Shown here: positions 2,386 to 44,105 of the stretch, piece by piece
How positions within the stretch are numbered: the stretch's first letter is position 1
How the letters are laid out: every line of letters starts with the position of its first letter
NCBI RefSeq assembly: GCF_006345805.1
Contig: NW_021832224.1
Span: forward strand, 124,001 to 188,000
Length of the DNA: 64,000 nt
Source: Octopus sinensis
Taxonomy: Eukaryota
Reading direction: 5' to 3'
Notes under the pieces: generated by a model
Seen by the model: only the letters and a program-made list of their open reading frames with translations
Told to the model about the DNA's origin: nothing
Database searches by the model: none
Translations under genes and position numbers: made by a program

Positions 2386-4575
2386 TTATTATTCACCCCC
2401 AAGCTTGCTTAGAATAGCAAACCCGGCACAAACAGTCATAGCAAACTAATCGAATAAAGAAGCCAAGAAAGAAGGAACTGTCCGTGCTGATCAACATTAG
2501 CCTCCAAATCTTCAATACAGCTTTCCGGATCCAAAGAGAGGTGGGAAGTATCTGGTTCGCTCAGTTCCCATTTGTCAGCCTTCTACCGTCGTTCACCGCA
2601 CGTCATTTGTTTCCGGAAGGGTTTTACATACTGAAGATTTTTCATTGGTAAGTAATCAAGGGAGGTGGAGGTCCCCTTTTGACATCTGTGTCGTGCCAGA
2701 TGGACTCGTCGCCTCACGGGTGGGAACAGTGACAAGATTTGATCACACCTGGAAACTTGCGTCCTTCGGAATAGTGATGGGCCCATCGGGTAGTGTCGTA
2801 ACCAATTCTTCATGACAGTTTTTAGGGCAACAGCAGCCAGTGTTTTTCTACGCATTATGTCTTCCCGGTCACCAAGCACTGAGCCAAGCTTCTTGGATAG
2901 TCTCCATGTTTCCATAAGTTGAGTGTCTGAGCGTGATATCTCAACCACTTCCCTCTTGTCCGGGTTCATTTTTAAAACCATTCCCCGAGTTTTCCTGGTG
3001 CAATCTCCAGGAGTCTAGCCAGTGCTGATCTGTCGCTCGACACCAAGTCGACATCATCCGCGTAGATAATTTCGGTGATTGACTCCCCGTATAGGCTTCT
3101 CAGCTCTCGTTGGGCAGATTCAAGGTAAATCACGAAGAGCAGTGGTAAAAGGGAGTCACCCTGAGGAGTTCCCACATTTGTTAAGAAGGGTCTGGACAAA
3201 GTCCTCCCAGTAAGTTCCGTGTTTGTCAGTAGTACCTGGATCATTTTGGTTTTATCTTCTTCTAAGAAGCTTCCTCAGGGAGATTAATGAGAGAATCTTC
3301 CTCAGGGAGTTCAGCAGGGTAACCGGGCGGAGGTTTTCTACTGGGCCACTAGGTTTGTTAGATTTTTGAATAGGTATTAGAATCCAGGATCCGAGTGGGA
3401 GTAAGTCGTTTTCAGTAAACATATTATTCAGAATTTTCGCTATATTGCTTAAGAGAGACTCGGGTCCGTATTTTAAAAGCTCCGCACTGATGTCGTCCTG
3501 CCTCGCAGCTCTATTGTTTTTTATCCTGTTATCTGCCTTTTTAACTTCATCCGAAGTAATTTTATTCCTTAGAGGTCGTATGGGGACAGAGAAAAGTGAT
3601 ATCGGCTCCGTGTTCGTGTTGAATCGTTGTTTAAAGAAATCCGCTATAAGGCTTACCTGTTCCACCGAGTCAGATACTTTAGTTCTTTTGTTGGTTAGGA
3701 GTCGAAGTTTGGGGCTGCTTTTCTTCCTATTGAGTAGCCTCAATGCTTAAAACATTTGTGCATTGTCCTTGAGAGATTCCAGCTCCTTAAGTTGGGAGGT
3801 CAGAATATCCCGACCGTATTGGAGATTCAGTCGTCTTATTTGTTTCTGAATAATTGCTCGTCTGGCTTTCAGTGCATGTTTGGTATCCGAATCCGTAGTG
3901 TTCTCAATCGTCAACTTGAGCTCCTTTTGTTCAGCCGATAGGGCGAAAACATCCGGATGGCATAGTCTGGTAGTGTTCTTGTTCTTTAAGTGTTTTCCAA
4001 CACATTTATCTGCGGCCTGATGGATGCCACTAGACATAACTTTCCAAGCGACAGTCGGCGTTAGTCCAGGCTTCATGTTTTTGAGTGATTCTTCAATCGA
4101 TGATTTGTAGATGTTTCGGGTAGATGGTGAGAAGACCAGTTTTTCCGTCAGGTATCTGCCCGGTGTATGAGTCATTCGATGATTTCATTTTTTCAGCAAG
4201 TATGATTTCTGCAGACTGAATCTGCTGACGAGTGATCCACCATAAAAGCGAGAGTCCAATAGGAGACATACATCTTTTTGTCGGCAGATGATGTAGCCAA
4301 TTTGGTTATAAATAGGCCGCAGTTTTTTTTTTTTTGTCCCATTTTTGTCACGTCGCCTTCCCGTCCAGGCGATTTATGTCGAGCAGGGGTTCAAAAGCCG
4401 TGTTGCATAAGAAGAAAAGTCCAAGCGTTTTGCAGAATTTGGCTAATATGGTTCCTGGCAGGTTTCTATATCCTCTTCCGTGTCGTCCAATAAAGGTTGT
4501 GCTACAGCAAATACCAGCTTTTGAGTTCCAATCGCCGGCGATGAATAGGAGTGTAGATGATTTTAAGGACAAATT
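2386..4575 (-). mobile_element. Non-LTR retrotransposon (RTE-like; APE endonuclease + RT), 5'-truncated and frameshifted
   Basis: Minus-strand ORF pieces: FIAGDWNSK (APE), NLRPVTLLNSLRKILS, GTPQGDSLLPLLFVIYLE, YADDVDL (RT). The 3' end near 2386 has a short (AAT)n tail. Confidence 0.9.
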
Positions 4576-5760: not shown

Positions 5761-6252
5761 TCCATCTTATTCTGCTGCCTAATTAAATACTAACAGTAAT
5801 AAACTAAAGTAATTTTCATTAAAATTAAGAAATTATCTGCTAAAGATGTGCTAAAACTGTGTACATTATTGATAACAATGAATGATTGATATTTTCCACA
5901 GACAAAACAATTCGCTTCCATTAAAGCTAAAAACCACTTCTAATCTACATCTTCTATCAACTTAATAAAACAATATTGATTTTAGCCGATAAGGATTATC
6001 ATAAAATATGTTTAGTTTAAGTACTTTCACAAGTTTTCAAGATTTTCTCCAAGTAAAATAAATTTCAATTATTGTTAATTATATCATAAAATTATTCAAG
6101 ATTGTGCCTGTACATAATTTCCGTTTCATCAGTGATTGTACATAAATAAATATTTGAAGATAAGTGTCATTATCAAGATTACTACATATTCTATCAATTA
6201 ATGTCGTGTGAGTTCGATATTATTTAGGTATGAACGTTAAAAAAGCATTTTT

Positions 6253-6868
6253 ATGACATCTCAGTGTTGCTGTCTCATTCCTTTTCTAAGTATGACACAT
6301 TTTTCCAATTTCAGGAAAAAAAGAAAAAAACAATGAGACCTACAAAAAAATTGTAATCGTCGGAGATGGATTTTGTGGCAAAACTTCGCTTCTGACCACG
6401 TACACCACCGGATTCTTTTTAACAGAATATGAACCGACCATATTCGACAATGACGTAATTGAAGTTCATGTTGAAGGAAAAACTGTTGATTGATGTTTAC
6501 ATTTTTAGGTTAAGGCCTCACTTTGGGATACAGCTGGACAAGAATCGTTTAAGAATCTTCGGCCATGTTGTTATGCTGATACAGACTGCTTTATTGTCGT
6601 CTATGCAGTCAATAATCCAGCAAGTTACAGGAATGTGGAGACCACGTGGATTTGTGAAATTATGTCGAGCTCTCCTAAGGCACGTGTAATATTAGTGGCC
6701 GCAAAAGTGGACTTACGAAAATCTAATTCTGGACACGTTTCATATGAAATGGGCAGAGCTATGCAAAGAAGGATTAAAGCGTTGGATTTTATTGAAACTT
6801 CAGCTCGTATGAATATTGGTGTCAGGGAAACAATCATGGCTGCTGCAAAAGCGGCTATCAATCATTGA
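6253..6868 (+). CDS. Atypical Rho-family small GTPase (3 exons)
   Basis: Exons 6253-6289, 6315-6484, 6509-6868 give MTSQCCCLIPFLRKKEKNNETYKKIVIVGDGFCGKTSLL...YEPTIFDN...LWDTAGQE...AKVD...ETSA...AAINH*. G1 and effector-loop motifs are Rho-type. Confidence 0.9.
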
Positions 6869-7566
6869 CATTGTTATATTAATAAAAAATCAATGGAAAG
6901 TTAAAAGCATTGCCAATTGGTCATTTAAACTACCTAAATAGCTATTTTAGAGAAACTCATTTATCATTTATAAATCGAAATTTTTCCTGATATTTCAGTC
7001 TTAAATTGAGTGAACGGATTATAGGTAAGGTCAGAAAATACATTTAGTTTACTCACAACTGCTAACGAATAATGATTAATAGACACGTTTTAAGCGTCAT
7101 AAGGTAAATAAATGGATGGTTAAGATTTTGATAAAAGCGGGCATTGGCTACATGGTTTGAGTGGACTCTTGGAACGAGATTTCGTCAGAATTGGTTATGA
7201 AATAAGTCCTCAAATGCAAAATTTTAAATTCTAACAAAGGAAGTGACACTTTTTAGTAAGCGTGTAAGTACCAGAACATAGAGAAATGGAGCATTTTTAT
7301 CAACTGTTTGAAAAAAGCGGCAACGAATAATTTTAATTTTTTTGAAATTTTTGTTCTTGTAGTCAGAAATCCAAATATCATTTAAAAATCTCAAAATTAG
7401 GTTTCTGTTAATTTCCATTTTTCATATCACATTACCTACTTTCATCCCGACAATCTCTCACGTAATGATAGGACCACTCTTATAAGCAAATCGTTTTATA
7501 CATAAAAATACGGTAACTATTTTTAAGAGTAAAAAGAATAAAAAGTTGTAACAAAAATTATGATCT

Positions 7567-8086
7567 TTAACTCTTTGGACATTGAAAAATACATTTAAGA
7601 TCAGCCAAACTCTTTGAAGACAGTTTTTTATCGCGAATTGACCTTGATTGACTACAATAAATAATTAACCAACAACAAACATAATCCGACGACTATTTTT
7701 AGATTTCCAGTATAATTTCTCAGATGATTCAAATACATAATTTTCTGGGTTATTTGGAATCTCAGATCCATTCAAATCTGCGAGTATTTTATCAAAATCA
7801 TTATTGAAATTGTTTGGTTGTTCGGTGGGACAGGAGAGGCCTTTGATGAAATAAGAATTAATTTTCACCACAAAGACCGTCGTTTCTTTTAGCGACGATG
7901 TTAGTTGTGATCCCATTCTCAAATTTACCGAGTCCTTTGCCCTTTTTCCAACCCATTTTTTCTAGCATTTTTTGTCCAAATTTATTATCGTCTAAATTAA
8001 TTAAATTTTAATATACCTTGGGACCATTTCATTCCTCGAGGATCTTTCGATCTTTTATCTTTTTTTCGTTTTTTTTCTGCCCACAT
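7567..8086 (-). CDS. PINX1: PinX1-like G-patch protein (short form)
   Basis: MWAEKKRKK...DPRG...DDNKFGQKMLEKMGWKKGKGLG (G-patch)...DFDKILADLN...KKLSSKSLADLKCIF follows the PinX1 N-terminal region; 3 short introns. Confidence 0.8.
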
Positions 8087-9973: not shown

Positions 9974-12900
9974 ATGGTATTCGAATCTGTTGCGGTTGAA
10001 TTCTGTAATTCATTTCTCGGTCAATACTTTGAAAATCTCGACAAATCTCAACTAAAAGTAAACATATGGCAAGGTGAACTTCCAATTCAACATAAATAGG
10101 AAATATTCATTTAACAAACTTAAAACTTAAAGCATCTGCCTTCGTATACTACTTTTTTGTTAATTTTTTGCTAGAATCAACTAGACCTGCCATTTGTCTT
10201 ACTACATGGCAATATTGGTTAGAAATAATTCATTTATTCACAATAGAACGCCTTTTGCTTAAAATCCCCTGGAAAAACTTATATTCGGCACCGATTGAAG
10301 TCGTTTTGGACGATTTGTTGTTATGCACATCTCCTTTGGACAGTCCTACTTTTTAATTTATAAATCTTAGAATGGAATGAAGTCATTTTGGACCCACAAG
10401 AGGAAATTAGACTTAAAATTGCCAAGAAATTGAGTGATCTGGCCTCGTTAGAGTCACTGGAAAACACAGAAACTGAGGACACAAAAAACACGACATTTTT
10501 ACAAATGTTGACTATAAGAATGCTCAAAAATTTGGAAATTGTCATAAATCGTGTACATATTCGCTTTGAAGACATGAATTGTGAAATGCCCTTCATTTCT
10601 GGACTGACTCTCAAGAGTGCAACCCTTAAGGTCCATAAATATATAATATTGGGTAGACTACTGACTCAGAGTGGCACGAGGCACCCTGTTCTGACAGCAA
10701 TTTTATCTTCAATAAGGTTTGAATTGAACATTTATTTGATTAGTTGTTTAAAGTTGATTCGATTGGTTTTTATTTTAATCAAACAAATAAAGTTAAAGAA
10801 ATAAACGAGAATTCATATAGTATTTTGAGTATTTAATTTAGTCATACGTCCGATCCATGCTGTCTGTATGATTAGAATAGACTCTCGGCCTGATCTGACC
10901 GAGTACCAGCAGCCAAAGGTATTTGCCGATATCCGTGTTGACGAAGTTGAAATCAATCTTATAAACACGCAGGTTTTGCTTATAAATATATTTTGCAGTA
11001 TTTTGGATTCATGGGGTTTTGTGATTCCATAATTCTGTCCCAAAGAAGGACCAAGTTCAGAAAATTTAGAAATGACATGGATTTGCACACGAATTGGAGA
11101 CATATGTACCATTAGTAATATTTTGATTCTTTTTAGGTGGCAATATGCTATAAAATGTGTAATGGACACCCAATCTCATAGAAAGATGAGAAATATAGCT
11201 CAGATGATGGCACATAGACGGCTGTTTAAGCAATATTCGGAAGCATATTTTCATAAATTAAACAAATCGAATAATCCCTCACATGACGAGGATATAAATG
11301 TTGATTTTTGTTCAAAATTGGCAGAAAGGGGAACGGGATTTGGACGTCTTTAATATTTTTCTTGCACGAAAGTTGGCTTCTCTCAAAGTGACTGTAAAGT
11401 TGTCGGATAAAGCAAATAACTCTAAAAAAACCACTTGGGGTAAAATTACTAGTTGGTTTGATACCAAACTTGAATCTGCCGAGTCGAGAGAATTTACCGC
11501 CGAAGAGAAGACAAAGTTATGTAAGGCTATTGGATATGTCGGAGAAATGTCAAAATATCCAGATTCTGTATTATTTTAGTTAATTTTGTAAGTATGTGAT
11601 TTTTAAATGTGAATTTCTGCTAAAAAATGTGACTTTATCTCTGTTTGACAATCAACTGATGTTTTGCTACTAAAATAATGTTTAGCAGATCGCTGGCAGT
11701 GTTTAGAAGCAAAAAACTAATGTCGACTTACGAGGCTATTTCAGACGGATTCAGAATTGACATTTCGTTGGAGGATTTGTTTGTTTGTGGCAAAACAAAT
11801 GCGGGACGTGAGAGAATTTTGTTGTGCAAAGAATCTACAAACACAAAACAAAATTTGCCTGTACTGGACCTCCAATTTGTAAAAAACCCAATCAACCAAC
11901 CATTTGACAGCATTTGTAATGTGTTCTCAAGTCCAATGTCCATGGCATATGATTACGTAAGTCTAAATTTATGATTTTAGGAATCCATCAACAAAATTTA
12001 TAACTTTTTTATACCTCCAAAGTCCGTAGCTTTCCAAAAGTTGTTGAATTTGGATATTTTAGATTCAAAACTATGGCGTACGAGAAACTAGAAGAACTGA
12101 AGGACATTTCAGCGACCACACTCACAAAGCTTGCCGATAGTAAAGACCGAATGGACCTCAACGTTGAACTGAATCCTCTCCATATTATAATCCCGGATAA
12201 CGGAAATTTGGGAGAGTACATATTGTTTATGACGTAAGGGGATCTCGTGCACTTATTGTGGATCTCGGGTATTTGAGGATTACTTCTGACCACGAGATTT
12301 ATTGTGGTCCAATCAACAAGTATATTTTGTTGCTTGAAGGGATACAAATATTATATGCTCACAAAGGTTAGGTTTGTTCGTTCTACAATAGAAAGTGATT
12401 GGCAGACTGCCCGCGTTTTAAAAAATTCTGAATTTCATATTCTGAGACCTATCAATGTCTCTCTATGTCTAAGTCATTGTACGATTCCCTGTCTTGATAC
12501 TCCACGGTTTTAATGTCACGTAATTCTGATAGATTGTCAATTGCTGCGAATTTGCCTGATCTTCACGTAAATGTGAGCGATCAACAAATTAAACAGTTGG
12601 TCAATAATTTTGTGAAATTTCCACTTCCACACACATTCACAGATTCTACAAATGTTTTTAAAAATCACTAATCTTAGATTTTTGAATATTCACAGGAAAT
12701 TGGGGGAAGTGTCCACGCCGATAAAATGGTTTATGACGATATTGTTTCGTGCATGTCTCTCAAGTATTGCCATGTGTGCTTACTTAGTAGAAAAACCTCG
12801 TGGAAGAAAACGATTATCTGTTTCACTACGTTTTGAAATAAATTCAGTATTTTAAACTTTTTAATAACTTTAAAGCTTAAATTGCGACTGTCTAAGGATG

Positions 12901-15900
12901 TCCCTTTTTTGACTTTTGAGGTTAACAATTTAATTCTCGCGTTATCAACTCGTACAATAGATTCTGAAATAAATTTTCAATTAAAGTCTATTGGACTCGT
13001 TCATTTTTCGGGTTTTAACTTTTAATTTTAGTTTAGGAAATAAACAAACTCAAATTATATCATCGCCCAGCAATAAGAAAGAATCTGTTCGGTCGCTTAG
13101 AATTTCTTATCAATCCACGGTTATTGCACATTTATTTATTTTTAGAATTGTGGGGTTCTAGAAGGTCAGAATTGTAGAAGACGTGCGACGTTTGATATTT
13201 CGACTTTAGACTGTTTTATTGTCGATTCTTCAATTGCTGAAATTGTGAACAATCTATCAAGTATTTCTTGCGAATTTCCCAAAGAAGAAACACGTTTTTA
13301 TTTTTGATAATATTTTTGTTAGCTCAAGATGACAAAAACGTAGAAAAGTTGTCAAAAGCACCTTATGGTGTGGATCTGGTTATTGTGGCGGACATCCAGG
13401 AGATAATGATGACATTGAAGACTGTGAACTCTGAAGGAATAGATTTTAATGTCCGCGGAATGCACTCCACCGTAGAATTTACAAAAGGTAGAACAGAAAT
13501 GACATTTTCTCTGTCGAATATTTTATTGTCACAAAAGAGTCAATCTCCTGGACTTTATCGCCACATTATTGCCAATGTGGAGAATGAGCTAGTTTTTCAT
13601 GCAAATTTTGTTTTTTGGACTCGCCGAACACACGACGAAACGTTTCCTGACATTGAAGTGACATCCAACATTTCAAAACTCTATATTGTGTACTATCCTC
13701 CCGTATTTATGGAAATTATCCAATTTTTCAACAACTACGAATACATCAGGTCTTCATTTGATTCAAAGTTGACGTCACTTGCCAAACGCACTACAGAAAT
13801 GGTCACTTGTGAACAGTCTAAACTCATTTACTTAAATGTTTTGTTTTATGATGAATTTTAGATTGAACTCGACGCTCCGGAGATCATTATCCCCCATCCT
13901 GTCAAGCTTGGTCAATCTCTCATTCTCGATTTTGGGAGATTAAGAATTATTAATAGTTTTGAAAAAAGTCCTTTGGCTGAAAATATTAAAATTTTTCTTA
14001 CTGACTTATCCATTTCCAGGTTATCAATTATTTCTACGAATCGTAGGAGTATTAAAAGTGAAACTGACCAGAACTATATGCTTGTTCTTCCCATAACTAC
14101 AAATTTGTCAATTAAAAGGCTTCTCAATAATTTGCGTGTTTCGAATTGTCCTCAAATTGAGGTAAATGCGGATCTTCAGTCGATTAAAGTTTTCAATTTG
14201 AATATTATTTTTAAGATTGAACTAAATTTTGATGATTATACCTTTTTTACTGAAATATTGGATGGTGTTTCAACTTTTTCGGAATTAGGAGATTCACTGG
14301 AAAGTACACAAATCGGTAGATATTTTTTTAATGTCTAAACAGATCAAAATATTGAGTTTAATCCAGTGAGGGCATATATTAGTTTATTCGCCATCTTAGA
14401 AGTTTCTAATATTGAGATTGCGTTGTTTTTTGACGAAAAAATCGTTACAAATATCGTTTTTATATCAATAGGGCAGACATACTCCGCACGAAGTTCAGTT
14501 CAGTTATACCTGCTTTAAATTATCACAAAATGTCGTAAAATATACAAAATATGACAATTGTGAAGCAGAGTGTTCAATCTTCTTTGATGATTGACTATTC
14601 TGGACACCAGAATAAGCAGACATGATAAAATAAACAGGTTTTTTTACTTAAATTCAATATTTTTTTTGTTGACTTAATTCGTTTAGATTTTTTAGTCGAA
14701 AAATCAATCCAAACTCGATTGATAAGCTCGTGAAAATTCACTGCTTGATTAATCCAAACCAAATTTCTTGTTCAGTATTTAATTTCCTATTTTATAGTAA
14801 ATGTTGAAATTTGTGATATCGTTCTTATTTTAAATTTGGAATTCATTTTGCGTCTTTTGAGTATTTTTGAACAAGATGACTCGGGAAAGAAGGCTACCAC
14901 ACAAAGCAGTGACAAAAAATGTATATTGGAGATTTATTTCAATATTAGATGTCAGAAAGTCACAGAAATGTGTTATTCTCAAGACTGCTGCTCGCGCTGA
15001 TTTTGTTTTAGTCGAGAATGCATCTGTTCTCGATTCTCGTGCTTTTGTCTTACAGGTTAATATTGATTTCAAATTTTTAGTGTATTTTTAAAATGGTTTA
15101 TACTGCTAATTCAAACCAGACAACTCTAAAAATAGAGTTTGGTGATTTGATAATATATGCTTCCAAATTTGATCGAGATTTAAAACTTAAATGCGGATCA
15201 TATGTTTATTTTATCATTAAATGTGTTAGATTCTGGAACGTACTTTGATTACGTGTTTTTATTCTGTTGGTTTATTGGATGAGATACTATTGGTGACAAT
15301 ACCTGAGGTTTATGTTCACTGGTCCCCTGCGATAATTGCAAGTCTGTCTATAGCTTTGAGTTCTTTGTTTTCCCCTGAGGTGTAATTTCTGAGTGAGCTA
15401 AATTTAGGTAATAACGGAAAAACGTGAAAAAGATTTGAATCTTTTATTACGCGAAAGGAATATTATTGAATCTGATTTTCCTTTTCTAAAGAAAAATTTT
15501 AATGTTGGGAGCAGTGAGGATTCGATTTGTCCGATACTTTCACCTAAGACTAAAAAAGTGTTTTTCAACTAATTTTAGTTTAAGTTTGAATTTGCGATTT
15601 TGTCGATGTCAATATTTTTCTATTCTGGGTTTTGTCCAACTGCAATGCCTTTGGTTTTAATTGAAAGTTCTCTCCACGCGAAGGGGGAAAATTTGTCAAA
15701 TAAAGTTTGTGAAAACCTTATTTTGTATTTTAGGTGTCTTTAAAAATGGATTTAAAGTTAAGTATTGGATATTACAATAAACAATTTCTATGCTGGGAAC
15801 CGATTTTAGAACCTCTGGAAGCAGGGGAGTGTTTTAAACCATGGACTGCTTCAGTTGAAGTTTGTATTTATACTTTGATTAATTAGGCGGAAATTAGTTT

Positions 15901-18900
15901 ATGTGAACCAAAAAAAATTTTAGTGGATCTTTCGTCGAATGACTGTCTTGAATTTACAGTTACCACACATTTAATCGATCTTCTAAGAAGTCTGACTAAT
16001 GTTTATTTTATGTTGTATATTTTAGGAATTTGACGATTCATCAGAATTGATTAACATTAGTTTCGGAACTCACGAAAATAAACCAGAATTTATTTTTTCA
16101 AACTATTGTGGAATTCCTGTTAAAATTATATTTGACGAAACTCTGATGACGTCGACGGGAGAAAAATCGACTGTTATAATGCCGGGAACTGATGATTTGA
16201 GAGTTTTTAACAGAAATAACGATTTTCTTTCCAAAGAAAAATATCTTGAATTTTCAAAGAAATCTGAATATAAATCAAAAATGTTCACACTCAAAGTCAA
16301 AAATTATAAATAATGTGATAGTTGAAAGAACATGGAGATTGTTTTGTGATCAAGGTGAGAGGTGCACACAAGACTGTACTTAACCTAAAAAATTTTGAAA
16401 CGGGACAAATAATCCAGCTTATGATCGACGTAGTAACACTCCAGTTTGGATTGGGGATAATTTTACGGTCTACTGTGGAGGTGATATTAATCATTTTGAA
16501 TCGTAGATTTGCAATAATCACTCACTCGATTTTTGTGTCTATCTGGAAGGATCAGAGAAAATGATTGTTTATGCGGGAAAGTCTATATATCTCTCTATTC
16601 CTTTTCTTAATATGTGTGATGGAAAGGTTTTATGTTCTCCTATTCTGGATAAAGAGTATTTTTTTTATTTGATGTTTTAGAATAGTTGTTCCATCTAAAT
16701 CCGTTAAAATTAATAAATCAGGTGATTTTAAGGGTCGTCAGAATGTGGACTGTTCTGACGTGAATGGGAACATTATTTTTACATATTCGGTTTTTAGGGA
16801 AATTTCATGTTTCAGTCATTTTTGGATGAAAATTTCATCTTAAATGACGAAACTGGAGTTTTAGACGTATCTACAACAATTGGACTGTTTCCTGTTCTTA
16901 GAATCCGTAATCTTCTGCCATATCGAATTGCATATTTGTCTTGTTATGATTCATACACTTTTGTGGATTCCGATTCTCAGTCTGATATTTATTTGGTCGG
17001 TAATTTTATTTTTTTGAAGGTATTTTTAATTCTTTTTGCCAGCTCTTTGATTATTTGACTGAAGTTTGGGAATGTTGTGTCTCCGTCGCGAATTTTATTG
17101 AATCAAACATTCAATATTTGGAATTCAGATCTCAGAGTGGAAAGATTGTGAGAAATAAATTCAGCTAATTTGCTAATTTAGTCACTCAGACTGTCCTGTA
17201 CGGTTAGAGAAGGATTGGTGATGTGGGATGTCTATTCTCCCTATTGGATGCTCAATAAAACTGGATTAAATATAACTTATAAAATAGTTACTTTTTATTT
17301 TGTACGATTAAGAACAAATCGACATATGGACATCCTGATATCAGCAGCAATTATCTCCTATTTGATACTCGTGCATTCGATTCGTCCAGCGCGGTTTTTT
17401 GGTATTAAAATTAATTTTGAACAGCTTTCGATTAAAGTTGGAAATTCTTGTTGGTCGGACAAGTTTTCTCTCGACACTGCTGGCAGTTCAGGGTCTCTTT
17501 CTTTTAAAGAAGGTACTCGGAAATTTCAAGTTTTTTTAAAAAAAAATAATTTTAGATTGGAATCAGAATTAAAATGTCAAGTTATCCATTAACAAAAATA
17601 ATACTATTGACTCCTTCCATGTCTATCCACAACCTCTCTTCCATAGATCTCCTAATAAAAAGGGACATTTGGGAATGCTTGTCTATTGGTTTTATTTTTG
17701 AATAATGTGATTGCAGATAGTTGCATTCCTTTGTGGCAAAGTAATGACGAAACTCTAAAAAAGAAGGACGAACACTTTTTTATTCTCGCAGATAAAAGAG
17801 ATTTAAATACATGCTCGAATCTCGTTTCGATATCTTCTTTGCAAAACCAGTCTGTCCCTTTAATTAACCAATCAGTATTATAAGGCGGATTATGTTTAGA
17901 CTGGGGAGATTGTACTCATTGTGTATATCACTTTTAACATAAGTGAAGGAAACATTTTGTTGTCAGTGGTCGATTTTCTAGAGCATCACGCGGCTGTGAG
18001 GCTGATAAACCACTGCAAGGAAACAACATTTTTATATCGTCAAAAGAATGTCACATATTCGCGTCTTTCAAGCAATTCTACGATAGTTTGCGTTGGAATG
18101 GATAGCAGTGTTGAAAGTTGTATTGAATGGACTGTCGGGAGTCAGAAATCACATAAAACTGATTTAAAAACTGTTAATTTGTTCATAATACAAAATAGGA
18201 TTCGATTTCGTGCTGCACTAACGAAAAGTATGATGATGTTTATTTGGTTTCATTCCTTTTCGGTTTGCTTCGAGTATTTTTGTTGACGGAAGATCGAATT
18301 TTAGCCCATAATTTATATCAAGTTGATATTTTTGTATTTTAGTTTTTGGATGAGTGAGCACGAGGATCCGTGGATTGTGGTCAAAGTTAATTTGGATTCA
18401 ATTGGGCTATCATTAATAAATAAAAAAACAAATTCAGAGTTATTATATTGCTCAATTACTTGGTTTGCTATGTAATGTGAATATGTTCAGTCCTTTGCGA
18501 AAGTGGGGATCTGAGAACAAGAATTGTAAATTTAGCGCGTTCTCAAAAGACCAATGTGACTTCTTGGATAGAGCACATGCTTTATATAAATCTTTCACGC
18601 AAGAGAAATCTTCAGATGACTATATTGTGACATTTAATGGGATATCAGTAAAATTTGTTTGTTTATTTCAGTATAACTTTTCAAAAATGATATACATTGT
18701 CAACGGGAATCATAAAAAGATGTATCAAAGGGATCAATCTGCTTTTTGGCTCATGTGGAGCTCGTCTTTAAATTCGAGACGTCTTCATTTCAAGCTATAT
18801 CGCCTCCAAGTAGATTCACAATCCAAAAATATGATTTTTCCTGTCGTGATTATGCCTATTTCTGCAAATTCTGATCAGAACGTGAGACCATTCATCGAAG

Positions 18901-20599
18901 GAAGTTTATTTGTGCAAAAACGCCTTCATGCCACAGCCTTGCAAATAAAGTATCAAATTCTTTGATGAATGGACAGATATTGCCATTTATTAATCCAAGA
19001 GTTGTCAGTGAACTTGGATTCTTATTTTCTATTGGATTGCGTCAATTTCTTTCAATCTTCTTTTGCTAGAATGGTTGGAGGTTCAGAGTTGTCTAAAGAT
19101 ATTCATTTGGCCATGCAACCATTGCAATACATTTTTGAGTGCGGTTTATTTAGAGAGTCGAAGCAGAATTTTTATGATTTTTTGCACATTTCTCCGCTTA
19201 AAATCACATTTAGCTTATCTTTGGAGGAATTCTTTGGAGGATTTGATCGTTTTGATTTCTTAGCTTTATTGAAACTGAGTTTAATGGGGCTTGAGTCTAC
19301 CATTGTCAATATGAAAAAGGTGGAACTCAGATTAGGCTATTTTGAACGAAAATCTCATACATATGGATTTGATCAACTCTATTCTGAAATTTACAGACAT
19401 TACTTGAACCAGGTATGACACGAAGATACAAATTTCAAGATTTTAAAACAATTTTATGCACTTGTTCTGGGTTTGGATGTCTTGGGGAATCCTTTGGCTC
19501 TGATTCGGGGGCTAAAGTCAGGGGTTGTTGACTTGTTTTACGAGCCAATAAACGGCGCCATTCAAGGACCAGGAGAGTTTGCTGATGGTTTAATGACTGG
19601 TACTCGCAGTTTCATTGGAAATACGATTGGTCTGGCTAAAATGAATATTTTTAGGAGGAGCTGCTGGGGCTGTCTCTCGAGTGACGGATAGTGTGGCTAA
19701 AGGCTTGGCTACTATTTCGATGGACAGGGAGCACCAGAAGTATAGGTCTGTCAGAAAACAAGAACAACTCGGTGTCGGGAAAGAGTTTGTAAAATCGAGT
19801 CAAGGATTAGTTAAGGTTTAAAATAATTTTCATTTTCAGGGAATTGCTGACGGAATTACGGGGATTGTGAATAAACCGATTAAAGGAGCTCAATCGGAAG
19901 GGATTGGGGGATTCATGAAAGGCTGCCAATGAATGATATAACTAATTAGGAATTGGAAAGGGTCTAGTTGGAGCTGTAGCCAAACCTGTCGGTGGTATTG
20001 CTGATTTCGCCAGTTCTTCAATGGATATTATTCAAAAAATTACAAAACCTAGCGAGGACCCTTGTTTTCATGCAAGGCCTGGTCGCTTAATGACTCCAGA
20101 TGGAATAACTCGACCTTATTCGTTCATAAAAGCAGAAATTGAATCAATTTTGAAAGTAATTTTGTGTGTTTATATTCAAAGTTAGCAAAAGACACGGAAT
20201 TTGTCGGATCAGATAAATATATTTCTCACTATATGTGTGCTGATGGAATGACTCTTTTTATGGTCACTGATCGGTTATTTGTTTTATTAAAACATAATTT
20301 TAGTCGTGTCCTGATTGTTAAGAGGTGCAATAGACAGTGGGTTCATGAATCAGAGATTTGTTATTCTGATTACAAAGGTTTGCCTACAGTGAGTGGAAAC
20401 GAAATTAAATTTACTTATAAAGTATATAAACGTTATCAGTTATGTAATAGGGCTCCATTGGGAAATTGAAAACATGGCCTCAGACTAAAGTTCTGGTAAT
20501 AGCTGATAAAGGGCGATTGCAAGTAATTTTATATTTTGTACGTTTTAGCAAATTTATAATGATATTCTACTTGCTCAGAAAATGTTTCAGCAAAATTAA
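9974..20599 (+). CDS. VPS13: VPS13A/C-like bridge lipid-transfer protein, many micro-introns
   Basis: Chorein-N start [34 protein letters not shown] and [20 protein letters not shown]; [11 protein letters not shown]; C-terminal [41 protein letters not shown] and [20 protein letters not shown]. Middle exons were not individually resolved. Confidence 0.93.
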
Positions 20600-22794: not shown

Positions 22795-24287
22795 TTATAT
22801 GTCGTAGTAATAATCACAAAAGTGAAGCCATTGAAGAGTGGAGGCGGGAATGTCGCGACTACCAAATATAAACAAATTAAGTACGAGTTCATTCTGCACT
22901 TAATTTGACTGATTTCATCTTGGTCAATCGGTGAAAATGGGTGCCACATTCTCATCGCAAATTCTGAACAAGTCGGCCTAGACATGGCTGAAATATATAT
23001 ACCAAAGAGTGGGGAGAATGTTATATTCGTCTACCTCATTGACATACATCTCCAATCCGATCAGGTTATTTGAGATATATTCATGTTTTTTGAACTTTTT
23101 TAGCCGATCATGTCGGACTGTAATTAAATAATTATTTTTCGGGTAATCATATGTCAAAGGGTCACAATTGTTGTAGCCCTTTTGTGCACCGAAAATGATT
23201 GTACGGTTTATTTCTTTTTTTCTAAAAGTGAGTTTTTAAAACAAACATTTCTTCTATAAAAGAAGTAAATTCTAAGACCTGGTGTTTTTGCGCTTTCACG
23301 TAAAGATATTTGTCTGGAAATAGCTGTTCTATCTCTTCTATTAGTTGCAATAAGAAAAAGGTGGATATGTTTGAATAAAAGTCTATTTTTCCGTCTGATA
23401 ATACTATCTCGGGGTATCCTTTGCTCAACGGAAATAGATCCACTGTTATATTAGTAAGACTTTTACAAAACAAATTAAACTGAGGAATAACCCTAATCCC
23501 CCTCAAGGCCGCATATTGAACAATCTCCCTGATATCGTCTGCCGTATAAATCAATTCCTCACTATAGGCTCCCTTATACCTTAATACACCAAATATATAC
23601 TTGGCTCATGTTTGGGTGCACTTTACTCTCATAGGGAACTGATGTGTTTCCAGAAAGAGTCCAATGAAATACATTTAGTTTATTGTAGGCCATCGCGTCC
23701 TATTTACTCATTAACAATTTATCGACCAAGCTCAGCTTGATTACTTCCATGGGAAGATATCGCTCAGAAGTGTCCAAATGAAGTCCACGATAAGAAAAAT
23801 AAGGTTCGCCTGTTATTTCTGCAGTAGGGACAATAAACTAAGCATGAATTGCCGGAGTACTCACTTCTCCAATATCGGAACGACAAATCAGTTGGCTAAA
23901 TGTTTCCAATCCTCTCAAAATCCCCCAAACAGTATCGGAAGACACGTGTATATTCCCAGATTCGATGCTGATACGATCTACCATTGAATGATTATATTCC
24001 AAACATGACTCGTTCATGTTTTCGTAGGGAATGGACTCACATTCCCCGAACATGTCAATTTTCACAGTCGAGATTAGTCCATATGATGACCCAGGGAGCT
24101 CAACTGGTCCACATTTGAGTCTGGTGTTCAAGACAATATCTTCATAGCGAGAACTAGCAGATTGTAGAATTAGACAGCCCTGGTTATAGTTCAGTTGGAA
24201 ATTAAAATTATCATAGTCCAGTTGAAAAGTTTTCAGATAGTCAATTACACTCGTTGTCAGAATTAGACAAGTGAAAATAAGGATCAT
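22795..24287 (-). CDS. GH20 beta-hexosaminidase homologue lacking the catalytic residues
   Basis: Hydrophobic N-terminus; SDTVWGILRGLETFSQL, YRGLHLDTSERY, DAMAYNKLNVFHW, YTADDIREIVQYAALRGIRVIP, TLWPTCSEFAMRMW, CRMNSRDIP. The HxGGDE position reads YVKAQK. Confidence 0.85.
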
Positions 24288-34606: not shown

Positions 34607-36681
34607 TCAAGGCTGTGGACGCAATCTTCTAATCTCAATTCGAATATTTCGACAAAACCCATCCACAAGTGGAATACAATTCAAATACTCACACCCACGA
34701 CACTCCAAAAAAATATCAAAATAAAACAAAGCCATAAGCAACACAAAAAACAAAATAGCAGCCACAGAGAACCCCAATAAATTGAGTAGCCTACACTTCC
34801 TCCTCCACGGACATACCGTCATATGCGGAACCAAAACAAACGACATAAAAATGCCCATAATAAACCCCCCAATTCGAGCAGTATTATCAATATACGGCAA
34901 AAAACCAAACAAAAAATGAATAAAAACAATTCCACACAACTTGAACAAAACAATCCCCGGCCTACACACCACATTCCACTGGTGAATCAACTCCACAAAG
35001 GGGACAGCCAGGACACCCAGGAGACCCCCACTGGGCCCACTCTAAAATATCAGGACCACACTCACATGGACTACGTAGGGCATCAACACAGCAGATGTGA
35101 GTGTCCCAGCCACTCCACTGGCTAGGAAAATGATAGCAATTCTGAGGGATCCCACAAATTTTTCAATATCGCACATTACGAGGTATTCGGCCAGCAATGT
35201 GAGCACTAAGTGGAATATTCTACAGTCTAAAATCCCCAGTCTACCCAGCATTCATAAACATGGTGGTAAAAACACGGTAGAACTGGTCTGGGGTGTCCTT
35301 TTGAGAGAAGGGAGCATTCCACATATATTTTGGAGACAGTTGACCTATAAATAGAGGGGTGGGGGTGCCTGGAACACAGGGTGGCCTCCGGGTGGTAGAA
35401 TCCGTGGAGGAATGTGCAGTGTTGGTGGGTGGTGATGATACATTCAGCCTGTAGACGGACACAACAGGGTCTTCCGGTGAGGGTACATCGCATGTGATTT
35501 AGATTGTCGTTTATTAGTTTGGTTGTTTTGTTGAAATTGACTGATTTTAAACAAATCTAATTAATTATTTTATTTATTAATTTAAATAGATATTTAAATT
35601 TAATACAGGCCAGTTAGTTATGGTGGGGCTCCATTTTGAGATACCTACAGAAGCGGGATCAAGGCACCATCTACGAAATTATACAATCTAAATATACAGA
35701 GGGTCCTGTCCACAAACAGAACCACCAGTATTGTGCTTATTCCAGATAGCATTCCTAATCTAATGTATTTATTACAAAAATGAGAACAGAACATTGTGTT
35801 TGTAGTGACTGATAACATCCACTCCCATCATTAAGAACACAGCATGCAGTCTTCTCCTCCAGCTGTCTATCCCTTTCAACTGCCTGTTTAATGTTCAGGT
35901 CAGGCCGCATGCAGGGAGAGTATTTTGCCCCCAAAAGTATTAGGTCTTTCTACGCATAAAATATTAGTTTTTACATGTTCTGGTCCAAGCCAAATATTTT
36001 CACTGACATAACGTACTTCTGGCACAATTCCCATATCAGGTTTTAAGACCTAAAATGTCTTTTTGGTTTATAAATACGAAATCTCTTATCGTTTTTAACT
36101 GGTAGCCAATTGGAGCAAAACCGTGGACTGAAATGGCCACAATTGTGACCATAATTTGTACGAACATTAACCAATATGTAAAATAAGGTCTTTGTTTAAA
36201 AAATGGAATAAACCGGTAATTCGACGTGTTATTTTGTCCGGTGGGTCTTTGTTTGAGTCTTATTCCTAAAAGTCCCCACAAAATCGATGAAGTCCGGGTT
36301 CGAATCCCAGTCACCGCATTATTTGGATGTTGATTTCTTGGTAGCAATTCTCTGGGTCTAAAAATCTAAAGTTTTGTGATTACGTTATTCGGTTTTCTCG
36401 GTTATTTTCATTTTGATTTTTCTGAATTATAATAAACAATATTTTACAGTAAATGTGTTTAGTATTTTGTGGGTAGCCAATTCTACAATAGATGGTTTGT
36501 TTCTGTGTGGACTGTCCACGGAATGAGTTTCCTGTGTAGTGTTTCCCCTCATGAAGCTCCTGTTCATAAAATAGGTTCTTCGATTGTCCCAATCTTGGTC
36601 TGAACCATTTTCTGATAGGCCAAAAAAGTCAACAACTCCATCAGAGATCTTTTTCTGTAGGGAACTTCTTCCCTCTTCCAT
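34607..36681 (-). CDS. RHBDF: Inactive rhomboid (iRhom)
   Basis: SLQKKISDGVVDFFGLS, RPYFTYW, HGFAPIG, WPIC...HMRCTLTGRPCC, EATLCS, PDQFYR, GPSGG (Pro before the Ser site), LPYIDNTARIGG, C-terminal CEYLNCIP. The true start may be further upstream. Confidence 0.93.
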
Positions 36682-37779: not shown

Positions 37780-40164
37780 TTAAAATCGGTCAAGAGTTCG
37801 AATGTGTATATCTTCTTGTTTTACATAATACTGTCCCCAAAGACGACTATAAATTATAAGAAACATGACGATGATTTGAGATATTAAAAATTTGGTCAAA
37901 TATAACTCTTTTCGAATCGTAGTATTTCCAAGTGGAAAAGAAAATATTAAATACATAAAGTTTAAAATAAAGCAAAACGAACCAGCTGCCAATAAGAAAG
38001 AAGTCTCTCTATAATTGGCCGGGACTTTTGCAGTATGAATAGCGATAATTATAACGATAATTTGCATCACAATTGCAATCACTGATTCGCTAAAAAACAA
38101 ATTTGTGTCAAAATTGCAAGATTTTATGGCCTGAGTCCCCTCGTAGATATAAGTAATTGGCGGATAGTAAAATATTTTTACTGCCGCCACAATAATCTAA
38201 ACGTTAATAAATATAACGGCACTGGTAAGCTCGAAATCAGCAAAATAATGACAACGATGAATTTTTTAGATACTAAGAATTTTATTATTTTTGTGTGTGA
38301 AAAATATGAAACGTTGAAAATTATCAGGATTCGACTCCCTTTAACAATCAAAGCCGAATTTATTAAAGATTCGGATATGATCATGGCTATTCGTACAAAC
38401 TAAAAAATTCACCAATAAAATACTCTGCAAATATTTTTTGAAGTATATAAAATGATCACAAAATTTGAAGCGTTGCCAATTAAAAGACCAATAAATATAA
38501 TTGCAATAGTATCCAGACCTGAAGCTTTGATTAATTGAGATTTATAATTTATAATAAATAAAATCAAAGCAAAAACAACAAATAAAAGCTCCAATGAAAG
38601 AAATACAAAATAAACAATTTCTATTTTGTTCAATGGAGCGTGAATAATATTTCTTTTAACACATCTATTAGGTAAATATCAAATATTTAACTTTTGTTTT
38701 GATTCATCCGGAAAATATAGAAAATCGCATTTTTGGCAAATTGTGTTGTTGATAATTATTTCATCTTGGCTGCACTTTAAACATGACCAGCAACATTTAA
38801 GACTTAAATGATATCTTTTGATTTCAAATTGTTTGCAAGGTTTATTACATTTTTCGTTAAGTCTGAATTTTGGAATGTTGATGTACTTAACTAAATTCAA
38901 ATTCGACTCTCCAATGATAAATGGCTTGAATCCCTTTGAATTATTGACACCATTAAGAATAAGAAAGGCACCAGAGTCGCCATTTTTATCAATTTTTATA
39001 GTTTCTCCAGCAAATTCAAAGCTTTTTGAAATGAAATATTTGTTCAGATTTGTTGCACTCATACATTCATGCAAAACTTGACAAAATAATCAAAAATTAA
39101 AAACCTTGATTCATGCACTCTTCTCTGTAACTATTCGTCGCAGCTTGAAGACCGACGTAGACTGTACGGACAAATGGTGAAAAAAAAGAATCGTTCACTT
39201 TACTGAGATTTACGTTTGGAAATAATGTATTTAGATGAATTTTGTTTATATTTTTATTTGTAAGATAAATCAAATTATGGATGTTTTTCATATGTGATCG
39301 ATTAAAACGATGTATATTTACTGAATCACCGGTGATGATTGAAATATTTTTAAACCTTGTATCAAGTCTGTTTAAAAACGATGTTAAAGTTGTTTCAAGA
39401 AAAAAAGCCAATATGATTCCAATACGAGAATCAATGATTTGATTGGGCAATGTTTCTTGGTTAGTTTCTTCGTAATTTATTTCGAAACTTATGCATGCTT
39501 CCGAAATATCTCTTAATTTATTTTTGAATAAAATTAACATATCGTTAGAATATAATGACTTGTCATATAAAATTCCAAAAATGTTGGTATTTGTAGCATT
39601 TAGAAAATTGATTATAAATAATATTTGATCGATGTTTGAAGATATAATTCTTACAAAATTGGGATATTGTGTTTTATCGGAAAAACGACTTAGCGTAGAA
39701 TCGTAAGTCATTTTCATAATACCAAAATTGTTATGGATCGGAAAAGATTTTTGACTAAGATCACTACTACCAAAACCAACTACCAATGGAATGTAACTCT
39801 CGTCACTAAAAAGTGACGAAGAGTTTAATTTTGGATTTGTTATCCCAAAAACGGAGTCAATTGTTAAATATCGTATTGGAGATATTTGAATAGCCCCGAG
39901 AACGAGAATACGAGATTTGTAAGAATTGTTAATAAAAATTGCCCCAAATAAGTCAAAGTTGTAAGTTTCCTTCAAATTTTGATTGAACTTATTTATTAAG
40001 TCTATGGCTGCTTGAGTTTCATCATTTGTGATTGGGGCGTTTATGGCAATAATAATTTTTCCATGAGGATTGTAAACTCGATAATATGATTTGTTCAGTA
40101 ATTGTAGATAAGCAGTAATTTGTACAAATGATAAAACAATGAGTGATAAAAATACTTTTTCCAT
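37780..40164 (-). CDS. Class C GPCR (mGluR/CaSR-like: Venus flytrap + cysteine-rich domain + 7TM)
   Basis: Signal peptide; VVGFGSS...TYDST...FSDKTQYPNFVRI; CNKPC...KCCWSCLKC...ICQKC; 7 hydrophobic helices with LIKASG and KVPANYRET. About 4 short introns. Confidence 0.9.
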
Positions 40165-40329: not shown

Positions 40330-41193
40330 TATTTCTCGTTATATACAAATGACTGAATACATAAAATTATTTATTCGCAAAATATTTTCGTAATCATCTA
40401 TATGTGCATTTATTTGAGAAACATAAGTTTTAATAATCTCTAAAGCTCTGAAAGCTTCTGAAAGATTAACTCTTTTCTCATTTGATTCTTCTTTAATAAT
40501 TGTTTCCTAAGTATAATTATTAAATAAAATCATTAACTGATTGAACTTTTTTTGACTGTAACGTATCAGCTTGTTTAGATTTTTCCAAAATTCCATTAGC
40601 TCTTCATTTTCAGTATATCTATAATCAAGATATTGGATTGTCAATTTGAAATTTCTTAATTATTTCTTCATAATTATTTTTGTAGTTCTTAGATTCACTT
40701 TGATTGTGATTGTTTCATTAAAATGAGCAATAGATTTTTCATCATGATTTACTGATCTACTGTCTTCATGAAATTTTCTTAACTTGATACCATTTCGTAA
40801 TTTAAACTTTTCTAGCCATCCACGACTTGCTTTAAATTCTGGATCATTTTTTCCAATTTTAAAAGCTTTTTCAATTAACATCGAATCTGATAGAATTGCT
40901 TCACTAGATTCCATTAAGTCGATCCATGTTATCATCGCTACATCAATTTCATTAAATTTGAGTTTTGGAATTCTCGCTATGTTTAATTTTTTGATATCAG
41001 TCCTATTCAAAAGGTCAGATTTTGATTTAAGGTCGTTTATAGTTCTCGGAGAAATTTTCTTTTTTAATCGTGAAGAAAAAATCCTGGAAATTTGAGGTGC
41101 AGAAACAAATGGGTTGTCAGAAATATAACGTAGTATAGAAATTTTTTCGTTGATAGAAAGTCTAACACAACGACGCATCACGGTTAATCCCAC
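40330..41193 (-). mobile_element. pogo/Tigger transposase remnant (psq-HTH + CENP-B HTH, DDE deleted)
   Basis: RLSINEKISIL...EIDVAMITWI...LSDSMLIEKA...FKASRGWLEKFKLRNGI. Confidence 0.85.
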
Positions 41194-41638: not shown

Positions 41639-44105
41639 ATGAATCCTGAAATCATTCCTACCTTATACTCACTCTGTATAAATCACTTAAGAAAAAATCC
41701 AAATTCTATCCCAAATCTTCCTGAAATAGAAATAAATAAAAAATCCCTAAACATGATTTCCCACGGAATACACAACGACCTAAAGTATCTAAAAGGCAAA
41801 ATCCCTGAAATATTGACGAATGTGTTCAATGTTTCTCTTAGTTTGAAAGAATTGCCGTCTTCCCAAACAGAAATAGTATCACTAGACATTACATCAACCC
41901 CCATCGACGTCGAACATATTTTCAAAATATGTCAAAAATATCCAACTTTGATAAAATTACGATTGCTAAAAATCACTTCTGTTGTAGAAGTTCCTGCACT
42001 TCCAAAAAGCCCCAACAATGTGGAAGAATTTACAATTTTAGAATATGAAGATCCAGATTTATTAGAAACCTTATTTTTGACTGGATTTATCAACATTCGT
42101 GAACTCACGATTTTCTCACACGGCAAGGCCCAAGAAAACAAAATTCCTCAGCCTTTCAAGCCCTCTATTCTCAGAATCACACCTTATTTACAAAAAATTG
42201 ATTTTGATAATTGCATAATCTCAGATTTTGATATTTTTGCACAAAATATCTGCAATCCTCATTTCCTCAAGTTGTGAAATAAATAAATTATATTTTTTAG
42301 ACATTTTTATTACACAGGGACCGTTGTTGTTGTCCCCGTCGATCATACTTTTGTATCTCTGTTGACACGTGCAGTTAATTTGGAACATCTCGACCTTTCG
42401 GGATGTCTTCTTGATGATGTGGTGATTAAGTTTTGTTTGTTTTTTCATTCCAAGTGAACTTTCAAGACACAAATTTAAATTCCTAAGTCTTTTTAAATGC
42501 CCTGGTATATATGATCTCCAACAGTTTAATTCCGAAGTGGTTTGGTTTATTGTTGGATTGTAGTACGGAGGGGACATGCACTTGGACAAGACCATTCAAG
42601 CAGCTTTTAATTTTGAGCACAAACCGCTTTTTTTACACCAAGCAATGATAGAAATTGAAGAAATTCACCTTCATTTGAATCACTCTTTATACAGCAAGTT
42701 TTTTCTGGTATGTCCCCAAATTGACTGGCTAGTTTGTTGTGCGTTTAATCGAAGAATCGAAGGAATCATTTTTTCTTGAATCACTTCTGTTTTTTCTGCT
42801 TTTACTTATTTTAGTAATATAACCATTGATTTATTGCATTGCGATCAGATTACTCAAGTACGGAGATGGTTTGTACGTTTTTTGTATTTGTAGGCTCGTT
42901 TTCAGCACGATTTTACCGGTTGTCAAACTCAACATTGAGATTCCCGATGTATCAGCTGATTTGTGACTATTCCAGATCGTGAATAAATTTGCTTTTATCA
43001 TATTGCAGCTAAAACCCTGGAACCACTCAGTTTTGAACATTTTTTGTATGTAAAGTTGCCAGGAATGAACGAACTGTTTTATGTGGTGATGATGGGAATG
43101 GTTGAACACGCAGATTCGTCAATAATCTTCAACCGTCTTGTCAATATTCTCAACACTGGGATATGTTGGTCGAGGTCTGCTCTAAAGTACTATCTCGATT
43201 TTTCTGAGTGCATAGAGGTATGGTAGTTGTATGTTATACAAGTTCGCGTTAGAACGTATTAAAGTTGAGATTAACATGCCTAATTTTGAAAAAAAATTAC
43301 GTTTGTCCACTCTTGACAAATGGTGGATTTTTCTGTGGAGTATTACCGGTATTCTAAATTTGTCACGTTTTAGATGAAGCTGACGAAAACGTCATGTTGA
43401 TTGTAGACAAAAAAGGCATCGAAATTGCCAAAGAATGTATGGAAATATTGCTAATTGTCACACCGTCGAAAAGGGGCGCAGAATTTCATGAGATTGTCAA
43501 GTCAATTGTGGGCGCACTTGGAAACTTTGCGGAAGTTGCTGCAGCAAGGAAAATAATGGGAGTTTCGGGGATAATCGGGCTTTTATTGTACGGGCTTGTT
43601 TATAGATGTAGTGAAAAAATGGACAAGACTGTGCACTGTTTTGAAACGACGTACAGTGCCTGTGGAGCAATGTGCCATTTATTGAGTGACCGAGCAGACA
43701 TTTTAGCCGATTATGTCTTCCCAGAAACAGGATCTATTCCTGCGAAAGATTTTATTCTTATCCACATGAAGGAACTTATCACATCCTGGCCATTGTCGAC
43801 GAATACAAGTATTAATTATAGGTTGTGTCTGTGTGATATAATCTTTCAGGTCGTTAGTTCCAATTGTGAGACTTTTGGACGAGCAGTTGGATGAGCGGAT
43901 TTGGTTCTGGGCCATTTGGGTGTGTGCCAATCTTACTTGTATTGACGGTATGGTTATAAGTTCACGTTAAGTGGCGAAATATGTCCCCATGCTTGTATCC
44001 GTTAATGGGTTTGAACGTATTAATTATCTTCGGGAATGTTATAATCCTGAATTTTCTGCTTTTCATGATTTTGTGGATTTGTGCAATCGAAATTATGAGG
44101 TATGA
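41639..44105 (+). CDS. ZER1/ZYG11-family CRL2 substrate receptor (BC-box, LRR, ARM)
   Basis: N-terminal IPTLYSLCINHL (BC/VHL-box-like), LRR region, ARM region with WIFLWSITDE, TTYSACGAMCHLLSD, INYRSLVPIVRLL, WFWAIWVCANL, KYVPML. Confidence 0.8.

Follow-up and report, generated by a model that had tools for sequence, protein, structure and literature searches.

Can a Rho GTPase dispense with the lipid at its C-terminus and be held on the membrane by its N-terminus instead? Rho GTPases are the textbook C-terminally prenylated switches, with a membrane cycle run by RhoGDI. The question is raised by a gene at 6253-6868 (+) of a 64,000-nucleotide stretch of DNA (the window) labelled Octopus sinensis; the window is positions 124001-188000 of its contig, and the gene lies at VCDQ01001464.1:130253-130868. 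The best explanation of the locus, to which a probability of about 0.5 is given, is that it encodes a fast-evolving, lineage-specific Rho GTPase of a likely dicyemid, with a predicted palmitoylation-only anchor at the N-terminus.

Gene Structure and Tiny Introns

Read directly and translated piecewise, the region contains a Rho-like GTPase gene of three exons, with a predicted product of 188 amino acids. Exon 1 (6253..6289, +; 37 nt) begins with the ATG at 6253 and encodes MTSQCCCLIPFL, its last base opening the Arg13 codon. Intron 1 (6290..6314, +) is a GT-AG intron of 25 nt (GTATGA...TTTCAG), and the codon split across it, A|GA, gives Arg, followed in exon 2 by KKEK. Exon 2 (6315..6484, +), whose translation after the Arg reads KKEKNNETYKKIVIVGDGFCGKT...VEGKT, carries the basic stretch RKKEKNNETYKK, the G1 P-loop GDGFCGKT (6362-6385, +) and the switch I sequence YEPTIFDN. 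Intron 2 (6485..6508, +; 24 nt, GT-AG, GTTGAT...TTTTAG) contains an in-frame TGA, so that the reading frame closes unless the intron is removed. Exon 3 (6509..6868, +) runs from VKASLWDTAGQE to AAINH and the stop codon TGA (6866-6868, +), and holds G3 (6527-6544, +) with switch II WDTAGQESFKNLRPCCY, G4 AKVD (6701-6712, +), what is left of the Rho insert (the deletion falls between 6727 and 6728, +), G5 SAR (6800-6808, +) and helix alpha5. The coordinates, the 37-nt size of exon 1 and every motif quoted in a first-pass annotation of this DNA proved correct on this direct reading and translation.

Exon 2 has no in-frame ATG 5' of the P-loop, and an upstream start exon is therefore required. GT donors in the 600 nt upstream were enumerated for exons that join in frame to the acceptor at 6314, create no stop and have an ATG before the next upstream stop. 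Four solutions were obtained, and only the 37-nt exon 1 uses an intron of normal size (25 nt; none of the others is below 280 nt). The three alternative ATG exons encode just MF, MFSL or MFSLSTFT (2-8 residues) and could be joined only through introns of 282-300 nt. On reading the sequence, use of the alternative GT donors within exon 1 gives rise to a TGA at the junction, and extension of exon 1 upstream is blocked by the TAA at 6238-6240, four codons 5' of the ATG. The joining of exon 1 to exon 2, which the first-pass annotation had named as a point on which its reading could fail, is thus not refuted: the predicted model is the sole one with a typical intron, exon 1 being the only in-frame ATG exon reached through an intron of normal size.

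Introns of 25 and 24 nt are believable because those of another gene in the window span 23-30 nt. This gene, encoding CCT5 (CCT-epsilon), lies at 32164-30335 (-) and is complete but unannotated; its 542 amino acids are spread over nine exons, and its eight GT-AG introns of 27, 30, 23, 23, 25, 24, 23 and 26 nt must all go for the full protein to be made. Three of the eight have a length divisible by three, and each of these, like intron 2 of the Rho gene, is interrupted by an in-frame stop. Apart from the GT and AG themselves, the splice motifs at both intron ends are weak. TGA is the stop codon of CCT5 as well as of the Rho gene. Octopus genes are not known to have 25-nt introns.

A Rho-Type G Domain

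The two large exons match the Pfam Ras family (PF00071), exon 2 at 7e-10 and exon 3 at 3.6e-28, and the best 60 solved-structure matches of each are all Rho, Rac or Cdc42: Rho1, Cdc42, RhoA and Rac come first for exon 2, RhoB and RhoA for exon 3, the latter with a 10-residue gap at the insert. G1-G5 of the Ras-superfamily G domain are present as GDGFCGKT, T54, DTAGQE, AKVD and SAR, and the residues that contact the nucleotide and Mg are all kept (P-loop Lys/Thr, switch I Thr, G4 Asp, G5 SAR). Phe, Tyr and the Mg-binding Thr of switch I are conserved, Trp precedes DTAGQE as in Rho, and L86, R87, P88 and Y91 (LRPxxY) are kept when the window's switch II, DTAGQESFKNLRPCCY, is set against the Rho type, DTAGQEDYDRLRPLSY. 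The Gly12 and Gln61 equivalents, reported as retained in the first-pass annotation, are indeed seen in GDGFCGKT and WDTAGQE. By these motifs, the gene encodes a Rho-type switch that is intact and has kept the residues needed for catalysis.

Three departures from consensus to which the first-pass annotation had drawn attention are present, but each is less distinctive than it was taken to be. The Rho insert, which lies between beta5 and alpha4 and typically has ~13 residues, lacks 10 residues relative to RhoA, RhoB and Rac, but it is cut back in the same way in a Rhynocoris (bug) Rho and in proteins that carry the annotation insect RhoL, and the insert appears to be family-typical rather than universal among the proteins filed there. 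GDGFCGKT has Phe at the Ras-G13 position, but divergent Rho relatives vary here, carrying I, M, V, D, N or T. G4 is AKVD, whose Ala stands in place of the Asn of Rho or the Thr of Rac, but this is just one residue (Thr to Ala) from the TKxD of Rac and RhoL. What is unusual about the protein is not these details of the G domain but the joint occurrence of an N-terminal Cys cluster and a lost C-terminal Cys.

As a separate observation, switch II reads LRPCCY where the Rho consensus is LRPLSY, placing Cys89-Cys90 (6566-6571, +) in the effector- and GEF-binding surface.

The C-Terminus

In alignment with RhoB and RhoA, the protein ends (AAINH) two residues past helix alpha5, which is where the G domain of RhoB ends; other Rho proteins continue for 12-15 more residues beyond this point to the CAAX box. 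A C-terminal hypervariable region ending in CAAX or CXX is absent, the last Cys is Cys118, and the last 70 residues are Cys-free. The alignment thus bears out the earlier claim that the open reading frame stops at AAINH with neither a hypervariable tail nor a CAAX box. A likely polyadenylation signal, AATAAA (6881..6886, +), begins 13 nt beyond the stop codon and supports a true 3' end at this place.

Could a further exon supply the missing box, as the first-pass annotation had recognized? None usable was found within 2.1 kb. The sole frame in the downstream 2.1 kb that ends in Cys-x-x-x-stop does so at 8551, and a CAAX exon there would call for an intron of ~1.7 kb lying across a minus-strand open reading frame, with a donor that removes G5 or alpha5. 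Judged from its predicted sequence, the protein has no possible prenylation site.

The N-Terminal Extension and a Possible Anchor

The 17-residue N-terminal extension consists of CCC, hydrophobic LIPFL and basic RKKEK, with one Pro and no PxxP motif. The codons for Cys5-Cys6-Cys7 (TGT TGC TGT; 6265..6273, +) form the proposed S-acylation cluster, acylation itself being predicted. Palmitoylation-only N-terminal anchors, as in GAP-43, G-alpha-q and PSD-95, have Cys followed by hydrophobic and basic residues at the N-terminus, and MTSQCCCLIPFLRKKEK matches the sequence pattern of the GAP-43 type: Cys within the first ~10 residues, hydrophobic and basic flanks, and no Gly2. Residue 2 is Thr, so that the Gly2 myristoylation motif is absent and the protein could be S-acylated only.

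The anchor swap put forward in the first-pass annotation is found in the DNA as far as its architecture goes: a Rho G domain with neither tail nor CAAX box, and an extension made up of CCC, LIPFL and RKKEK. Given the gene, the analogy with known anchors puts the chances at about even that an N-terminal S-acyl anchor stands in place of prenylation. On this proposal, the hydrophobic and basic residues would confer a weak membrane affinity through which the cysteines could reach DHHC acyltransferases, and once S-acylated, in a reversible manner, they would keep the GTPase attached to the membrane by its N-terminus; the net positive RKKEK..KK stretch, taken with CCC and LIPFL, would be the make-up of a GAP-43-type anchor. 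RhoGDI binds its clients by their prenyl group; with no site for one, the protein would be expected to escape RhoGDI. More speculatively, the Phe at position 13 and the Ala in G4 may shift GAP sensitivity or nucleotide affinity, and the altered G1 and G4 might make this an atypical Rho, fast-cycling or mostly GTP-bound.

Another possibility, judged unlikely, is that this is a functional Rho with no lipid anchor at all, either cytosolic or recruited by partners or by its basic patch, as with CHW-1 or RhoBTB. The N-terminal cysteines would then be incidental, or would serve redox sensing or disulfide formation. Caenorhabditis elegans CHW-1, the RhoU/RhoV orthologue, has no C-terminal lipid motif and an atypical P-loop residue, and it functions genetically without CAAX or CXX (PMC5982818); loss of the CAAX box therefore need not imply a replacement anchor. 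Loss of the C-terminal Cys is also far from unique: among 172 single-domain Rho-like database matches with a P-loop, 15 (~9%, several of them fragments) have no Cys in their last six residues. The window protein is, moreover, Cys-rich in general (8 Cys, 4.3%, including the CC in switch II), TGT TGC TGT could be a slippage product, and the odd features of the protein may be drift in a fast-evolving genome. On the other hand, a Cys triplet at the very start of a protein, with a hydrophobic and then a basic stretch directly behind it, is how palmitoylation-only anchors are classically built, and this Cys/hydrophobic/basic motif is the one content of the 17-residue extension. In an exon of 12 codons drawn at random from the same base composition, CCC would arise with a probability of ~3e-4, which argues that the cluster is not noise.

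The same 172 matches give some measure of how rare a replacement anchor of the proposed kind would be. At least two Cys in an N-terminal extension occur in 3 of them, while none of the 172 has an N-terminal Cys cluster and at the same time lacks the C-terminal Cys. The earlier suggestion that no animal Rho subfamily has this architecture is supported by these 172 for the combination but not for its halves, each of which has an animal precedent (CHW-1 for the missing C-terminal motif, RhoJ for the N-terminal cysteines).

Comparison With Known Systems

RhoJ/TCL, of the vertebrate Cdc42 subfamily, resembles the window protein in being a Rho GTPase extended at its N-terminus, by ~20 residues, with cysteines there that are treated as palmitoylation sites; it has been modelled with N-terminal palmitates at Cys3 and Cys11, based on earlier work (bioRxiv 10.64898/2026.10.14.758331). 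It differs in keeping its polybasic tail, farnesylated CAAX box and full Rho insert, its N-terminal lipids being an addition and not a replacement, and in its subfamily, since no placement of the window protein in the Cdc42 clade was obtained. CHW-1 is alike in being an animal Rho GTPase with neither CAAX nor CXX and with an atypical residue in the P-loop. Unlike the window protein, it is a member of the RhoU/V group and lacks both the N-terminal extension and the Cys cluster; membrane targeting is presumed to be dispensable for it. RhoU (Wrch-1) and RhoV (Chp) offer a palmitate-only anchor, being unprenylated, and cycle nucleotides atypically; their palmitoylated Cys, however, lies in a C-terminal CXX, and their N-terminal extensions are proline-rich and regulatory, with no Cys cluster (PMC6959303, PMC10917059). 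As regards membership of the RhoU/RhoV group, the window protein has no C-terminal Cys and no PxxP.

Insect RhoL proteins are among the best matches of exon 3 (41-44% identity) and share with it a deletion of 9-10 residues in the insert, an A-x-K-x-D type of G4 context and a variable position 13, but most of them end in CAAX and start without an extension. The tree does not group the window protein with RhoL, nor is such a grouping rejected (p-AU 0.23). Yeast Rho3, for which Wu and Brennwald are said to have shown in 2010 that a palmitoylated Cys in the N-terminal extension sets the distribution at the cell surface, differs in retaining its CAAX box.

The closest parallels in mechanism come from outside the Rho family. 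The Rab5 GTPases ARA6/RabF1 of plants and PfRab5b of Plasmodium have swapped prenylation for N-terminal acylation (PMC3912013, PMC3871812), and in euglenozoan Rheb a dually acylated N-terminus replaces C-terminal prenylation (PMC5869587). In all three the anchor has moved from the C- to the N-terminus, as proposed here for the window protein. They differ from it in family (Rab5 or Rheb) and in relying on Gly2 myristoylation with a nearby Cys, where the window protein has Thr2 and a Rho-like G domain. The likeness to ARA6 and PfRab5b would thus be one of mechanism, drawn by analogy, and not of membership.

If the proposed anchor is real, the protein would tentatively be the first Rho-family GTPase with an N-terminal S-acyl cluster as its sole anchor, evolved in a parasite of ~30 cells after loss of the tail, the CAAX box and the insert; this fuller account is rated somewhat below an even chance.

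Family Placement and Relatives

The predicted protein is 41%, 40% and 38% identical to human RhoA, Rac1 and Cdc42 (124-134 bits) and 28% identical to HRas and Rap1A (65-70 bits). A maximum-likelihood tree places it on the Rho side of the 100/100 branch that splits off Ras and Rap, on a long branch of its own (1.58) that belongs neither to the RhoA clade (84/89) nor to the Rac/Cdc42 clade (91/91). When its placement was forced in AU tests, neither RhoA (p 0.22) nor Rac/Cdc42 (0.14) nor RhoL (0.23) was rejected, and nor was a position beside the outgroup, at the base of the Rho family (p likewise within 0.14-0.23). The phylogeny that the first-pass annotation had proposed as a check accordingly supports the family and leaves the subfamily unfixed by the AU tests; on its sequence the protein is best called an orphan, a divergent Rho-family member fitting no subfamily.

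The first-pass annotation had also suggested looking for orthologues in related genomes. None was found when the spliced protein was run against 5.8 billion clusters in a word-indexed search (best matches 39-46% identity, with no match to itself); exon 3 alone gave nothing closer in the same search, and a full HMMER scan with exon 3 of 1.84 billion representatives returned none above 50% identity. Nor did tblastn find any Rho paralogue within the 64-kb window.

The public annotation bears on these results. A pogo-like DDE fragment at ~49202-49783 (-), a single-exon open reading frame, is the sole window ORF found at NCBI, and it is also the only called gene in the 20 kb around it. With only this ORF called there, CCT5 and the Rho gene are missing from protein databases. 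Exact protein look-up of a family-C GPCR ORF and eight other window ORFs put none on record, the DDE ORF alone being found; on this contig, gene calls in the public annotation seem limited to single-exon ORFs.

Is the Rho gene alive at all? It could be dying or dead, or its 5' model wrong, with exon 1 unused, the gene silent and the tail lost by decay in a reduced parasite genome. Such a reading would fit the lack of orthologues in the clusters and representatives searched, the long branch (1.58), the non-consensus G1, G4, switch II and insert, and a public annotation with no gene at the locus. It is nevertheless considered improbable. The frame is intact over three exons, and the estimated chance, from base composition, of 188 open codons in DNA of 33% GC is ~1e-7; both introns are GT-AG and of typical length, and every nucleotide- and Mg-contacting residue is preserved. 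A start exon is needed upstream of exon 2, and one candidate alone fits. The annotation, for its part, also misses the plainly functional CCT5, so that the absence of a gene call says nothing. The locus is considered, with good confidence, to be a real and intact Rho-family gene without a CAAX box.

Origin of the Contig

Contig VCDQ01001464.1 (484,969 bp) is most likely dicyemid DNA, from Dicyema japonicum or a relative, left in the Octopus sinensis assembly. This attribution follows from the tiny introns, from a CCT5 far from that of molluscs, and from the fact that O. sinensis is a dicyemid host. Aligned almost end to end, the window's CCT5 shares 63-66% identity with its counterparts in many animals; its end branch in the tree measures 1.06 against a median of 0.11. 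As read from this branch, the host genome evolves very fast, which would explain part of the divergence of the Rho protein.

That the Rho gene is an octopus gene, as its GenBank label implies, is very improbable: the window is identical to part of VCDQ01001464.1 in the O. sinensis assembly GCA_006345805.1 (bioRxiv 10.1101/2023.05.16.540928), but introns as short as the 23-30 nt found here (<30 nt, with weak splice sites) have been reported in animals just for myxobolid myxozoans and D. japonicum (PMC13644364), the CCT5 is only 64-65% identical to mollusc CCT5 on a branch some ten times the median, and D. japonicum, a parasite of the renal sacs of O. sinensis, was collected from that host for genome sequencing (PMC6736024). 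A myxozoan source is less likely than a dicyemid one, the contig coming from an octopus sample and no myxozoan CCT5 appearing among the best matches. A ciliate or apicomplexan parasite was rejected as the source, since every named CCT5 match among the 120 listed is metazoan and the standard genetic code, with TGA as a stop, fits.

Other Features of the Window

From ~10100 to 19800 (+) there is a long run of short open reading frames in alternating frames, with a match to the VPS13 N-terminal (chorein) domain; a large VPS13-like gene, interrupted many times by tiny introns, is its probable source. At 37780-40164 (-) lies a family-C GPCR-like gene, in which a 355-residue ORF matches the ANF_receptor ligand-binding domain and an ORF downstream resembles transmembrane helices. 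Gene fragments at 23222-24287 (-), 34607-34996 (-), 43394-43894 (+) and 7858-7968 (-) comprise a beta-hexosaminidase (Glycohydro_20b2), a rhomboid domain, a ZER1-like domain and a G-patch-like ORF. The last of these, a short ORF just 3' of the Rho gene on the opposite strand, carries the motif GWKKGKGLG, recognized by eye. Rfam and tRNA scans of the window found nothing.

Transposon remains occur at 40660-41193 (-), 49202-49783 (-), 54066-54770 (+) and 2583-4175 (-), and include a Tc5/pogo-type HTH, a DDE_1 fragment, a Helitron-type PIF1-like helicase and three retroelement-like ORFs with no Pfam match. They are consistent with the repeat-rich genome of D. japonicum, 49% of which is repeats (PMC6736024).

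Implications

For users of the assembly, ~485 kb of probable dicyemid DNA labelled Octopus sinensis merits notice, as does the fact that the tiny-intron genes on the contig (Rho, CCT5) are invisible to standard annotation. For the Rho family, the consequences depend on the proposed N-terminal anchor. If it is real, this would be a Rho switch free of both prenylation and RhoGDI, with a membrane cycle set by palmitoylation and depalmitoylation, and it would represent a third independent shift of the anchor from the C- to the N-terminus in the Ras superfamily, after Rab5 and Rheb. It would also mean that a Rho G domain can work while tethered by its N-terminus, and the protein would provide a minimal natural scaffold in which to study orientation and GDI-independent regulation.
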